Both the position numbers and the translations under genes were made by a program. This document shows, piece by piece, positions 1,815 to 8,664 of a DNA stretch of 64,000 bases (positions within the stretch are counted from its first letter, which is position 1; each line of letters begins with the position of its first letter). The notes under the pieces are model-generated. The model ran no database searches, was not told where the DNA came from, and saw only the letters and a list, made by a program, of their open reading frames with translations. The DNA is from Trichosphaerium sp. ATCC 40318 (lineage: Eukaryota; Protista; Tubulinea), in NCBI GenBank assembly GCA_038496445.1, contig JALMLS010000417.1:64717-128716 (forward strand), given 5' to 3'.

Positions 1815-4800
1815 ATGACCAACCCTAAAAAAATCGGCGTATTCTTTGGATTGTTACTACTAATCCAAGCGTGCAGTGTACGTGTAACCAAACTATGCTT
1901 GTATTGCAATTTTCGTCACAATTTGGTGCGTTGTAGGTAGATCTGACGCGTTTTCTTGTAGGGCTTTACAGGCTCAGCTAGCCGCGGATTTAATGCTGTA
2001 GTAAGTCAGATTGCACTATTTCAGACCGAAGGAGGTGGTTTTCTACTCTCTGAGGACTCTTTGCCGTCATTAGAAGCGACATCATACGCACTCTTCCTAT
2101 CGTCATTATTTGGCCTTCGAGACAAGGTAACACGAGCAGCAATTGCATTTGCCGTGCGTATCAACGCTAAACAAGCGACTAGATCAACCCAAACGAAATC
2201 ACCAAGTTTATTGGTCATTTGAACAACAAAGACGGAGGATACTCTGATTTGGAGGGTGGAAACTCAGACATCGCAAGCGTTAGGTATGTGTTGACGTGTC
2301 AGCTTCAAAGTCAACGAAAAACTCAATTATTGTCAGATTTGCTCTCTTGTGTTACCAACACTTGGGCGGTGCCATCCCAGAAGCCGACAGAGTAGCTGTA
2401 TTCCTTGCCAGCAAATATGATTCATCATCAAAATTTTTCAAAAACAACGCAGGAACAAAGGCTGATATTAAAGCCACAGCACTTGCACTACAAAGTTTTG
2501 ACTTGTTAGGTGGTTCTGAGGTATGTTCTTAATTGTTTAGGCGCTGTGTGACGTTGTATTAATTGGATTTTTTTAGAGATCACAAGTAAGCAAAATCAAG
2601 GGCGCCATTAAGACACAATTGGGTACGTTTCATTTTTATTGTTTTCATCAAAATGATGACAAGTTAAAAAATCTTGAAGCGCATTTGCGCTTTTTTTTCG
2701 ATCTTGTTTTCAGTATTCGACGTGTTGCTGTGTACTGACCCTTCCATTAGCCAAGTTTGTAAAAACTAGTAAGACTGGTAAACATTTCGCATTCAGCGGT
2801 CTTGATGATGTACGTGTAGCAGTGGTCAGAGCCTGATTGCAATTATTGTTTTTTTTTTTGACAACTTTTTTTTTTCTTGTGCTTATACTCTTTGTAGTTG
2901 GAAGGCAACTACTACGGTATTGTTGCAGCTAAATTAGTCGGTTTTGAATTCGGTGATGTAAATGAATGGGCAAAATACATTGTAGCTAAGCAAATTACTT
3001 CCGGAGATGGCGTACGTACCCAAAATTTAATTTATTTACTGTGACTAATGTACTTCTTTTAGCTTGGCGGTTTCGTCGGTCCTAAAGGTGTCCCAAGCGT
3101 AGATGATAGTTCTTTCGCTGTCCGCGCTCTTGCTTCCCTCCCAGGTCTCGAGAAAGACTTCGGGTACGCCTTTTTTTCTTAGTCATGTATTATTTTTGTC
3201 TAACTCTCAGTTTTAGTATTGATGCTGCCTCTCTCCTTGACTTTTTCGAACAAAACGTTCAACATGATATCCGTGAAGCTGTGACTGCCCATACCGCTGT
3301 CGCTCTTACTTCCGCTTACCAAGAACTCTTCACCATTCAAATTTCTTATGAAGTCTTGGACAACAGAGTTGGTGGTATCGTCGGACCACGTGTCATCCAA
3401 GGAATTCAATTGAAACCTGTCGTCGTTGTAAAGACTGTCTATGGCTTTGCTCATGCTGGTCTCGACATTGGCGTCAAAATTGATCACCCTGGTGATGTAA
3501 AGAACTTTAAATTGCAATACAACTCAGACACTCAACAATACGTTGCTGCTGAGTTCTATGAAACCAAGGGTAAATTGGGTAACCTTGACTTTGACTACGA
3601 CTTTGGTTGTGACGTCATTGATTTGGGTACTCCAGTCAAGTTCCAACGCAAAGGTACAAGAATTTACTCCACTGTTTTTTTTTTCTTTTTTTCTTCTTTT
3701 CGTGCTTGTTCTTACTGTATTTGTTTTTAGAGGCCAAGAAGATCGGTTACGGTATCAACGTCCGCTCTGAAGCTAACCTTGGTGGTAAAGCCATCAGCCC
3801 TGGTGATGTTGTCGGTATTGGTAGCGAGTTCGAGTTTGGTGTTGCTCTACGTACCCAAGAACAAAAATCTTTGACTGAGGGTGACTTCACTCTTATTTTC
3901 TCTGTCTTGGATTCTTCTGGTGTTTCTATCCACAGCGAAGTATTGAACGGTAAAGACAACAAGTACGGCATAATTGTTTAGTTGAAATAAAGCTAACAAG
4001 CGCTTTTAGGAAAGCAATCACTTTCGCTTACACTTTGACTTCATCAAACATTCCATCCGGTTCCATTGATTTCCGTTTCGAGGTCAAAAACAGTGCTGGT
4101 GTCCATACTACCCACACTGTTACATACTTGTTGAGCATCCCTATGATTGGTACGTTTTCACTTGATTTTTTGCAACACGTGACTTGACAAAGCAACTAAC
4201 AAGTCAGTTTGCTTTCCGGTTTTTTTGTTTTTGGGTCAGGTTTGCTTACTTTTTTGGTAGCTACTGATATCAAATTCTTGAACTTCAACAAGAAGGATAA
4301 ACAAGATAGACCACAATACAAGGTTGGCGATACAATCGCTGTTGAGATGGTCCCTGCATCTCTCCCTGATTTGAGAACTGTCAAGACTTACGATAAAGCT
4401 AACGCTGCTGAACGTAAATTTTTCATGGACATTTCTACAACTAGCGACAAGTACGACTGAAATACAACATTATGATAATTTTTTTCTCCTTTTTCAAAGT
4501 GCCTAACAACCTTTCTTTGCTTTGACGTGGCAAAAAAGGGCGTACTTGTGTTGACTTTTTTTTTGTTTTTATTTTTGGTGATGTTGTTTGCTTATTGTTT
4601 TTCGCGTTTAGCCGTCAAGTCCTCAGATCTATCCCTGGTAAATCTTCTGGTGCTAAATACACATTCTCCCTTCCTGTTACAGCTTCCTTTGACTCTCTTG
4701 GTTCAAGCTTGATCTCTTTCCGCTTCGAAACCGCTGACAGCAAATCTATTGATCTTGCTCCTTATGATTCTGATATTGATGAGCTTATGGATGAAACTGA

Positions 4801-6315
4801 TGCTCTTGGTTACGCCATTGAGTCTGAACTCCATGTTGTTGAAACAAAGAACCGTCCAAAGGATCCTAACTTGTACTACGGTAACAAGGTCGCTTTCACA
4901 TTCAAAGTAAAAGATACAGTCAGTGATAAATACATCTGGCCTGGTACGTTCATTTAAGGTTACATAAAAATGTGACACACTTGTTTTTAAACGATGTGGA
5001 CTGACATGCTTCTTTATAGGTAAGGATCGCGCAACCACATACTTGCTTCTTCGTCATGAAGACAAGAGCAGAAGCACACCTTTTGTCAGCGCAAAACAAG
5101 CCGCTGAGGTCCAAACTGATGCTCATGGAAAACCAGAAAAGTTTGCCATCTCTTGGGATGTTAACCCTAACGCTATTAACGGAAAGGGTCAACTTGTTCT
5201 TGCTGCTGAAGGACCTGATGGTTCTAGTGTACCTCTCTTTATGTCCAAATCTAAAAAGGAATGGGCTGTCAATGTTGTCATTGGAGGAGAGATTGATGTT
5301 GATGCACGTTACCACTCTTTTGCTGGAGACGAGGATACTGAAGCTAGTTTCATTGCTACCTTTGACTTGTCTTGCAAGGGCAAAACTCTAGCTGTACGTC
5401 CAAGAACCGCACTGAAGGCTTTTTCTTTTGGTGTTCAAAACTTTATCGAAGGAAATTCTTTTTTTTCTTTTCTTTTTTTTTGTGAATCCGGCAGACACTC
5501 CTTGGTCTTTGTTAAGTAGTTAACTACATCGTACTTCCGTCTTCCCGGAAATTAAATTTCAGCCTGAGAAAAAACACCTCACGACCTTACACTAGATGGT
5601 CATGAGACACCTGTCCTTAAGGCAAATTTTACATTGTTCGCTCAAACTTTTGTTTTGTTGGTTCTTTTTTAGTAGTACCTTCCTTCAAAGCTTTGACTCA
5701 CTGTTGTCTTATAGGGCGCTCTCTTGCACGCTTCAATCTCCCTTGCTGGAGAAGATTCAACAGAGATCGTATCTGTCCCAGTTGTCCGTACAAGTGCAGG
5801 ACAATACCAAGTATCTTGGACTCTTGAGAAACCACAAAGCGGTGAATACGTTATTGACGTATACCGTGAGGTTGATCGTCAACGTGCTCTTGAAAGCGCA
5901 TCTGCTAAGGGAGGATTTGTTGCCAAACCATTGATCACATTGTCCCTTAACTTCAACGTACGTTAAGAAAGTTTCTTTTTTCTTTTTGTTTGTCTTTTCT
6001 TTTATGTCTTCTCTACTGTTTTGCTACGCTCACAGTGCATTCGTTTGTGTGACATTGATTCCTCTTTGTTCATACGCTCATTGAGTACTTTGAGGCCGGC
6101 GGTGTTTTTTGTGGTGACTACGCTTGCAGTGGAAAAACAATATTTTTTTTGGATTGTTTTTGGGTTGATGTTAACTTTTCTCTCTTTAGGCTAATGCTTA
6201 CATTCGTTTGCCTGTCCGTACTGAGTTCCTTTTCCTCATTCTTTTCTTGGGATTATTCGTTACTGTTAGTTACAAGAAGATTGAGATGGAAGGAGAAAAC
6301 AAGAAGAGACGTTAA
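1815..6315 (+). CDS. ~1000-aa type I ER membrane protein: signal peptide, prenyltransferase-like alpha/alpha repeats, beta-rich domains, C-terminal TRAP-delta (SSR4)-like domain and TM helix
   Basis: Multi-exon with actin-like high-expression codon bias. N-terminal GGF..PSLEATSYAL, KDGGYSD..SDIASVRFAL and GGFVG..PSVDDSSFAV repeats. C-terminal FIATFDLSCKGK..LHASI..PVVRTSAGQYQVSWTLE..SGEYVIDVYRE..PLITLSL..PVRTEFL+TM aligns by eye with SSR4. Confidence 0.75.
5487..5636 (+). ncRNA. intronic box H/ACA snoRNA candidate
   Basis: Hairpin, ANANNA (AAATTA, 5549), hairpin, ACA+3 nt (5631) inside a long intron; the second pocket is complementary to 28S 62635-62648. Confidence 0.7.
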
Positions 6316-6733: not shown

Positions 6734-7090
6734 ATGACAAATTTCAACCAAGCCTATAGAGGTGGCGTAACCCCGATAACTGGAGGTTGGAGCTCGGAAT
6801 GGAGGAATGTACGAACAAAATTCAGAAACTACTCTAGAGCAGGCGACAACCTTTGGATTGGCATCACGTCAAATGGAGTGAGCGGTTGCAGAGCTAGATG
6901 GAACCAGAAATACAAACACTTGGGTTTGAACCGCATGATGCCATTGTACGAAACTTCGAGCGACGACTTCAGGAAGAAGATGGAATTGCGGTTAACCGAG
7001 TTGATGGTTGATTTGGATAATGTAAATAACGGCGGTGGCGGTCCGGCTGGAAGTCCCCCGTATATTGTCTACGGATGTTGGAGAGAATAA
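6734..7090 (+). CDS. intronless GIY-YIG-like nuclease-fold protein, 118 aa
   Basis: WIGITS...RARW...Y...LYET...E..L...N..GGGG...PYIVY pattern; no introns. Confidence 0.55.
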   Translation: MTNFNQAYRGGVTPITGGWSSEWRNVRTKFRNYSRAGDNLWIGITSNGVSGCRARWNQKYKHLGLNRMMPLYETSSDDFRKKMELRLTELMVDLDNVNNGGGGPAGSPPYIVYGCWRE

Positions 7091-7403: not shown

Positions 7404-8664
7404 ATGGACGACGTTGTAGCCGTTGAGTAAGTTCTAGCTTATGTATTGCTTTAATTAACAGTCAATAAAGCGAACAAGACATACATCATCTCTTACATCT
7501 TCCTGTGGAAGTAATAACGTACTTTATTGAATACTTGGATCGCTTTTCGCGACTTAGAGCCACACGTGTCTGTTGGCTCTTTCGTGACATCGTATACAAC
7601 AATGTGGGCTTAGGGATTATCAGAGTAACGTCAAAGGAACGCTTACAGAACCTCTCAAGAAGTCCTCTTTTAAAGAATACAACAATTGATGTTAGGCTGC
7701 TTGCTAAACTAGATGATGCAGACTTATCTTATCTCTCTGGTGCATATAGCATCAAGCTATGGAATAACAATCATATAACAAATGAAGGTATCAAGCATAT
7801 CTCTGGTGTACAGAAACTTGTGATGAGATGTATACAAATCACAGATGAAGGCATGGAAGTTCTATCAGGTGTTCAAAAGATTTCACTTTATAATGCTAGG
7901 AATCTAACGCCTAGGGGTTTAAGGCTATATCTACAGCAAAATATGTTTCTTTGTACAACTCAATAATAACAGATGAAGGTTTAAAGCATTTTAAAGGAGT
8001 TGAGGCAATAAAGTTAGCGAAATGTAAGAATATTACAGATCTCGGCATTAAGTCACTCTCAGGTGTTCATACTCTTATACTTGACGCTACGAATGTTACA
8101 GATGAAGGCATACTATCTCTTGTTTCAAATGGAAACACTGTTCCTCGTATAAGCTTAAGATGTTGTATGAATATTACTGACAAAGGTGTTAAAAAACTTA
8201 GTGGATCAAGGTTTATTGACATAGGTCGTACTAATGTTACTGATGATGGTTTATCTTCTCTTGGTTGTGTTCCTTCTCTTTGCATTAGTGGGTGTACAAA
8301 AATATCTTTAAAAGGTATATCAGCATTAAAGAGTGTTCATGCTATTGATATTTCAAGGACTGGTGCTAAGGATTCTTGGCTTTGTGTTTTATCTCATGTT
8401 TTTCGTATTACTCTTGATGGGAATGAAGATATTACAGATTTTGGTATTAAAGCTCTTGGTGGTGTTAAACGTATTAGCATGGCTGGGTGTGATAAAATAA
8501 CAAATGCTGGCGTTGTATTCTTGAAGAGTGTTGAAACTTTGAATGTGTCAGAATGTAAAAATCTTACAAAAGATGTATTGGAACATTTGACATGTCTGAA
8601 GTTTCTGACTTGTCGTCGTACTAATTTACCACACCAATATAAAAACATTAGAATAAACCACTAG
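7404..8664 (+). CDS. F-box/leucine-rich-repeat protein with an apparent 1-nt frameshift near 7920
   Basis: MDDVVAVD|EQDIHHLLHLPVEVITYFIEYL F-box, then xITDEGxxxLSGV LRRs; adding one base at GGGGTTTAAGG joins ORFs 7505..7966 and 7951..8664. Confidence 0.8.

Follow-up and report, generated by a model that had tools for sequence, protein, structure and literature searches.

The DNA analysed (the window) was a stretch of 64,000 nucleotides from Trichosphaerium sp. ATCC 40318. Positions 1815-6315 of its forward strand held a single intron-rich gene of 16 exons, drawn from the three forward reading frames, which is probably the amoebozoan form of TRAP-delta (SSR4), a 968-residue type I membrane protein of the endoplasmic reticulum (ER) belonging to the complex of translocon-associated proteins (TRAP). 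The spliced model was in frame (2907 nt of coding sequence, i.e. 968 codons plus the stop), and all 15 introns were of the GT..AG type (47-321 nt), with mostly GTACG donors. Exons 2 to 16 aligned in order to three full-length relatives, one of which, P0001, matched exon 2 at residues 20-74 and exon 16 at residues 939-978. The exons, all on the forward strand, encoded the following parts of the protein:

Exon 1, 1815-1877 (+): start codon and a 21-residue signal peptide with a short basic N-end, a hydrophobic core and a QACS end.
Exons 2-8, 1962-2126, 2183-2283, 2337-2520, 2577-2622, 2751-2809, 2898-3011 and 3063-3163 (+): prenyltransferase-beta-like (alpha/alpha)6 toroid, non-catalytic.
Exon 9, 3217-3653 (+): final toroid helices and beta-sandwich 1, assigned from the relatives found with phmmer and from the structure model of P0001.
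Exons 10-14, 3731-3962, 4010-4149, 4261-4450, 4612-4943 and 5020-5393 (+): beta-sandwiches 2-5, macroglobulin (MG)/immunoglobulin (Ig)-like, and the first TRAP-delta strands.
Exon 15, 5715-5957 (+): match to PF05404, 81 residues.
Exon 16, 6190-6315 (+): last lumenal residues with a P.RTE motif, single transmembrane (TM) helix, cytosolic KKRR tail and stop.

The window gene was searched exon by exon, and the full-chain analyses (fold, profile) were made on database relatives, 31 full-length members of which formed alignment A1. Exon 15 alone matched the Pfam TRAP-delta model PF05404 (E 1.4e-5, profile positions 64-127 of 162) with 25.2 bits, just above the curated gathering cut-off of 25 bits, and the same model was found at the C-terminus of 28 of the 31 relatives (best E 5e-18). 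The A1 profile, run against the PDB, retrieved mammalian TRAP-delta (8bf9_D, 8b5l_K and 8b6l_H) at E about 1e-18, with positions 805-947 aligned to residues 34-171 of the 173-residue chains; this alignment spanned the whole mature TRAP-delta, with its TM helix and the conserved Thr-Glu where the helix begins. The TRAP-delta domain began within exon 14 (about its last 35 residues), and its Ig-like lumenal fold could be superposed on solved TRAP-delta. Judged from sequence, mature mammalian TRAP-delta is homologous over its full length to the C-terminal ~150 residues (Ig-like domain, conserved P.RTE motif and one TM helix), which upheld the SSR4-like C-terminus described in the original prediction. 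The window locus carried the only PF05404 match in the whole genome, and the profile of the 31 relatives, run against the 70-Mb genome in six frames, recovered this gene as the sole locus through twelve colinear exon matches (profile positions 13-949). A look-up of the TRAP-delta part in the ESM Atlas returned generic Ig/MG clusters alone, all below 0.9.

The cytosolic tail, KKRR, had the KKXX-type ER-retrieval pattern, which the tails of several relatives also fitted; Lys-rich tails were present in relatives, whereas the aligned mammalian TRAP-delta chain ended without the two lysines.

The relatives were found by phmmer with exon 9 against 1.84 billion representatives, which gave 40 proteins or clusters, most of them 920-1035 residues long (roughly 970 typically), with the exon 9 match at about residues 270-410, the place of exon 9 in the gene model. 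The layout was conserved across about 40 protein clusters; the precomputed database annotations agreed with it (Prenyltrans N-terminal, TRAP-delta C-terminal), and the N-termini of relatives were also signal-peptide-like. Those of named origin came from eight lobose amoebae (Stygamoeba, Balamuthia, Vannella, Gocevia, Pyxidicula, Echinamoeba, Nolandella and Rhizamoeba) and the ancyromonad Fabomonas tropica, whose protein carried both Pfam domains. Many relatives were Trinity open reading frames (ORFs) marked “complete” (944-992 residues in Fabomonas and a number of the amoebae listed above) or metatranscriptome contigs of ~3 kb; the Balamuthia relative was a genome-annotated protein of 997 residues (“hypothetical protein” in NCBI), and that of Vannella was labelled [quoted passage not shown] in UniRef. 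In a quick, unfinished maximum-likelihood tree, P0001 and P0002, the relatives nearest to the window protein, fell inside a well-supported clade with tubulinean genera, which makes a tubulinean host probable, and Fabomonas stood on a long unresolved branch nested in no amoeba clade, which argues against simple contamination, though vertical descent is not thereby proven.

A secreted toroid/beta-sandwich gene and a short TRAP-delta gene might have been read as one, given that the gene model was made from genomic DNA of this species and that exon 15 lay between introns of 321 and 232 nt, the longest in the gene. However, no stop, new start or signal peptide lay ahead of the TRAP-delta part, exon 14 joined beta-sandwich 5 to the TRAP-delta domain without interruption, and the same continuous layout was seen in about 40 relatives. 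Because many of these relatives are single complete transcript ORFs, the locus was read as one gene, as first proposed, and the two-gene artefact is extremely improbable and close to refuted. The codon usage of the gene was clearly more biased than that of the other ORFs in the window, in line with the strong bias claimed earlier and consistent with an abundant housekeeping protein. Splice donors were unusually uniform (GTAC in 12 of the 15 introns, 10 of these GTACG), and 14 of the 15 introns ended with TAG after a T-rich tract.

The protein differed from mammalian TRAP-delta/SSR4 (PF05404; 8b5l_K, 8bf9_D, 8b6l_H) in size: the mammalian protein has 173 residues with nothing before the Ig domain, whereas in the amoeba protein (968 residues instead of a single domain of ~170) about 800 lumenal residues preceded the TRAP-delta part. 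Exons 2-14 gave no Pfam matches one by one, because single exons are too short, and the full-length relatives were used instead. Pfam Prenyltrans (PF00432) was found at the N-terminus of 27 of the 31 relatives (best E 2e-15), and the family profile matched RabGGTase beta through the repeat motif in the PDB sequence search (E 6e-12). Two relatives, P0001 and P0045, were modelled. The P0001 model, built with alignment A1 (pLDDT 86.7, pTM 0.64), was divided as follows:

Residues 1-21: signal peptide.
Residues 29-311: helical toroid.
Residues 312-815: five beta-sandwiches.
Residues 820-940: TRAP-delta domain.
Residues 948-978: TM helix.

The toroid was an (alpha/alpha)6 barrel of PFTB-type repeats, and its best structural matches in the fold search were prenyltransferase beta subunits, with these scores:

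3dra_B (GGTase-I beta): 25.5 (root-mean-square deviation 3.0, 286 residues aligned).
1n4p_B (GGTase-I beta): 24.7.
GGTase-III beta: 23.3.
FTase beta: 22.8.
Squalene-type cyclases: 14-18.
Six-hairpin sugar-acting enzymes (glycosidases, epimerases, isomerases, phosphorylases): 12-17.
Complement TED domains: 12.7-13.1.

The N-terminal ~800 residues are a signal peptide, an (alpha/alpha)6 barrel without zinc Cys and five MG/Ig-like beta-sandwiches, and the signal peptide, prenyltransferase-beta-like repeats and beta-rich domains announced in the original prediction were all recovered. No column of the barrel had Cys in more than 4 of the 31 sequences, which indicates that the catalytic zinc site is absent. 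In the topology predicted from the signal peptide and the C-terminal TM helix, the barrel lies in the ER lumen, unlike the enzyme, which is cytosolic and pairs with an alpha subunit, and this location would part it from cytosolic substrates. Compared with the prenyltransferase beta subunits (GGTase-I, RabGGTase/GGTase-III, FTase; PF00432), the amoeba barrel shared the toroid but was lumenal and lacked both the zinc Cys and the alpha-subunit context, and a catalytic prenyltransferase was rejected on the zinc-site cysteine and the lumenal position. Three prenyltransferase beta-subunit genes of ordinary type were found elsewhere in the genome (C36:378596-380347, C104:169730-171065 and C20:392820-393968).

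The similarity of the beta-sandwiches to macroglobulins in the fold searches was at the domain level only. Alpha-2-macroglobulin, complement C3-C5 and TEP proteins have comparable arrays of MG domains, but the amoeba protein lacked the thioester Cys and the MG1-MG8 order; a thioester protein was rejected, there being no conserved Cys and the N-terminal toroid giving the wrong domain order. Searches with whole models in Foldseek were not discriminating, because any tandem Ig/MG array filled the lists (TM-scores 0.1-0.2). An internal duplication of the beta-sandwiches and the TRAP-delta domain found no support, the internal profile comparison giving no significant similarity (best probability 19%).

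The original prediction had interpreted this N-terminal region as a ribophorin-II-like (RPN2) region fused to TRAP-delta, a Rosetta-stone fusion which would record the contact between the two proteins; alternatively, TRAP-delta would be a truncated RPN2 paralogue. The general layout of ribophorin II (RPN2/Swp1; PF05817, PF23861, PF23860, PF25147) is indeed similar, with a signal peptide, lumenal helical repeats, beta-sandwiches and a membrane anchor in that order, and RPN2 adjoins and contacts TRAP-delta in mammals (PMC11186639). However, the genome contained a separate and complete RPN2 gene, which the original prediction had proposed to look for, at about G000:C33:260945-263783 (L005 2446-5284), made up of a signal peptide, a helical N-terminal region, beta domains 2 and 3 and a C-terminal TM part. 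The models Ribophorin_II_2nd (1.8e-12), _3rd (1.4e-6) and _C (2e-9) matched this C33 gene only and found nothing in the window gene. Among the 31 relatives, Ribophorin_II_2nd was matched by one, weakly (E 0.0034), and the N-terminal Ribophorin_II model (PF05817) by none, against 27 for Prenyltrans. The window protein has one C-terminal TM helix, RPN2 three. The N-terminal helical repeats of the C33 RPN2 loosely resembled the barrel repeat motif.

The family profile did not match the C33 locus in its own genome, nor did it retrieve an RPN2 chain from the PDB, and RPN2 was absent among the best 50 matches listed in each of four fold searches with the two models. The PDB result is weak evidence because single exons of the C33 RPN2, used as a control (phmmer, PDB), failed to find mammalian RPN2; likewise, PF05817 missed even the N-terminal exons of the C33 gene, so that the sensitivity of these tests for the N-terminal helical domain is low. 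By hhalign, two N-terminal C33 RPN2 exons aligned weakly, colinear with successive barrel repeats (probabilities 10% and 5%, not significant), but one of these alignments, that at the 10% level, lay partly in probable intron read-through. An RPN2 exon run against metagenomes retrieved no relative, in a word search that cannot reach 600-residue proteins from exon-sized queries. Fusion with, or descent from, RPN2 thus found no positive support and is improbable, although a very distant layout may be shared.

The gene was assigned to an amoebozoan TRAP complex as its delta subunit because its homology to TRAP-delta extends through the TM helix, because it is the sole such gene in the genome, and because TRAP-beta was present together with an exon bearing TRAP-alpha hallmarks. 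This probable TRAP-alpha exon (G000:C50:232886-233020, minus strand, L007) had an F-R-N-T-G stretch and then N-H-P-Q-D-Y, behind an acidic region. Several points weighed against this assignment. The TRAP-alpha Pfam match was below significance exon-wise (E 0.2, on C50) in a weak six-frame test, and a weak exon-wise six-frame Pfam scan of the genome did not detect TRAP-gamma, which also stayed below significance. The gene model was predicted from genomic DNA, the nearest relative being only 56% identical in exon 9, and the whole-chain results were obtained on relatives. Canonical KKXX/KXKXX tails occurred in only some relatives, and we infer assembly into the TRAP complex from homology only. 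The P0001 model had a long helix at residues 891-914, the site of the RPN2-reaching hairpin of mammals, and the P0045 model had none. This helical hairpin, a feature of mammalian TRAP-delta that was variable in the present family, lies between the last two strands and is described as peculiar to TRAP-delta (PMC11186639); the window protein had a 17-residue insert at the same site.

The protein might instead be an independent ER-lumenal or secretory-pathway receptor or scaffold which would act alone and has only an ancestral membrane-proximal Ig-plus-TM module in common with animal TRAP-delta, such as a NOMO-like spacer or a ligand carrier. NOMO, of the BOS complex, is a type I ER protein with a string of lumenal beta-sandwiches and a C-terminal anchor at the translocon, and has neither toroid nor TRAP-delta domain. 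Its general layout is similar to that of the amoeba protein by description, and no homology is claimed (NOMO is named in PMC11186639). This alternative gains from the 85% of the protein that has no TRAP-delta counterpart, from the undetected TRAP-gamma, from the varying presence of the RPN2-contacting hairpin in the family, and from the published view that core TRAP function can do without delta and that most eukaryotes lack it (PMC5321747; PMC11186639). We nevertheless consider it unlikely: the alignment with mammalian TRAP-delta extends across the TM helix and the conserved T-E at its lumenal end, as expected if the assembly interface had been kept, the genome has no TRAP-delta homologue besides the window gene, and both TRAP-beta and a TRAP-alpha-like gene were present.

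If the protein is the delta subunit, its C-terminal module would anchor it in the TRAP complex beside Sec61 and the oligosaccharyltransferase, as in mammals, and the KKRR tail would retain it in the ER. The beta-sandwich stalk would then hold the dead barrel in the lumen near Sec61 and the oligosaccharyltransferase as a non-catalytic binding module. Candidate ligands are a hydrophobic or isoprenoid group, for instance dolichol-linked sugar donors, or stretches of the growing polypeptide; the barrel is a putative binding module and its ligand a conjecture, which also counts against a firm functional assignment. A different translocon architecture in these amoebae, as put forward in the original prediction, is plausible.

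In published work TRAP-delta counts as a late acquisition of animals that plants, algae, yeast and trypanosomes lack, and it has been reported as unrelated to TRAP-alpha, TRAP-beta and the other TRAP subunits, with no known relatives (PMC5321747; PMC11186639). Searches of the full-text literature for a TRAP-delta that is long or comes from outside animals brought up no paper, and the public sequences of the long form were labelled only “hypothetical” or “prenyltransferase ... domain-containing”. The gene described here is a real TRAP-delta homologue with a conserved domain architecture undescribed so far. A conserved, single-copy TRAP-delta of ~970 residues in lobose amoebae and an ancyromonad implies that TRAP-delta originated before animals, and gives it the first clear relatives outside them. 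Some eukaryotes probably have a translocon bearing a large extra lumenal arm that ends in a barrel of ligand-binding type, and where TRAP-delta came from and what it does in the lumen become testable in culturable amoebae.

A further and tentative proposal, which we regard as rather doubtful, is that the long form is ancestral and already sat at the translocon of the ancestor shared by amoebae, animals and ancyromonads, that animal TRAP-delta is its truncated stump, and that the barrel holds an isoprenoid-linked or hydrophobic ligand (e.g. a dolichol-linked donor) beside the oligosaccharyltransferase. Loss of TRAP-delta in humans causes a glycosylation disorder, explained only by the small contact with RPN2. 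An ancestral long form with a ligand-holding barrel would, if true, provide a mechanistic root for this unexplained link between TRAP-delta and glycosylation.

Three further genes or ORFs lay close to the TRAP-delta gene. Upstream, on the minus strand (443-1448), was a gene with several exons that belongs to the 3-oxo-5-alpha-steroid 4-dehydrogenase family (Pfam Steroid_dh, E 5e-7), a family which includes polyprenol reductase and enoyl-CoA reductase. Directly downstream, a 118-residue ORF with no Pfam match (6734-7090, plus strand) occupied a GC-rich, G-skewed stretch, and beyond it two adjoining ORFs (7505-8664, plus strand) encoded a leucine-rich-repeat protein (LRR_6, E 2e-8).

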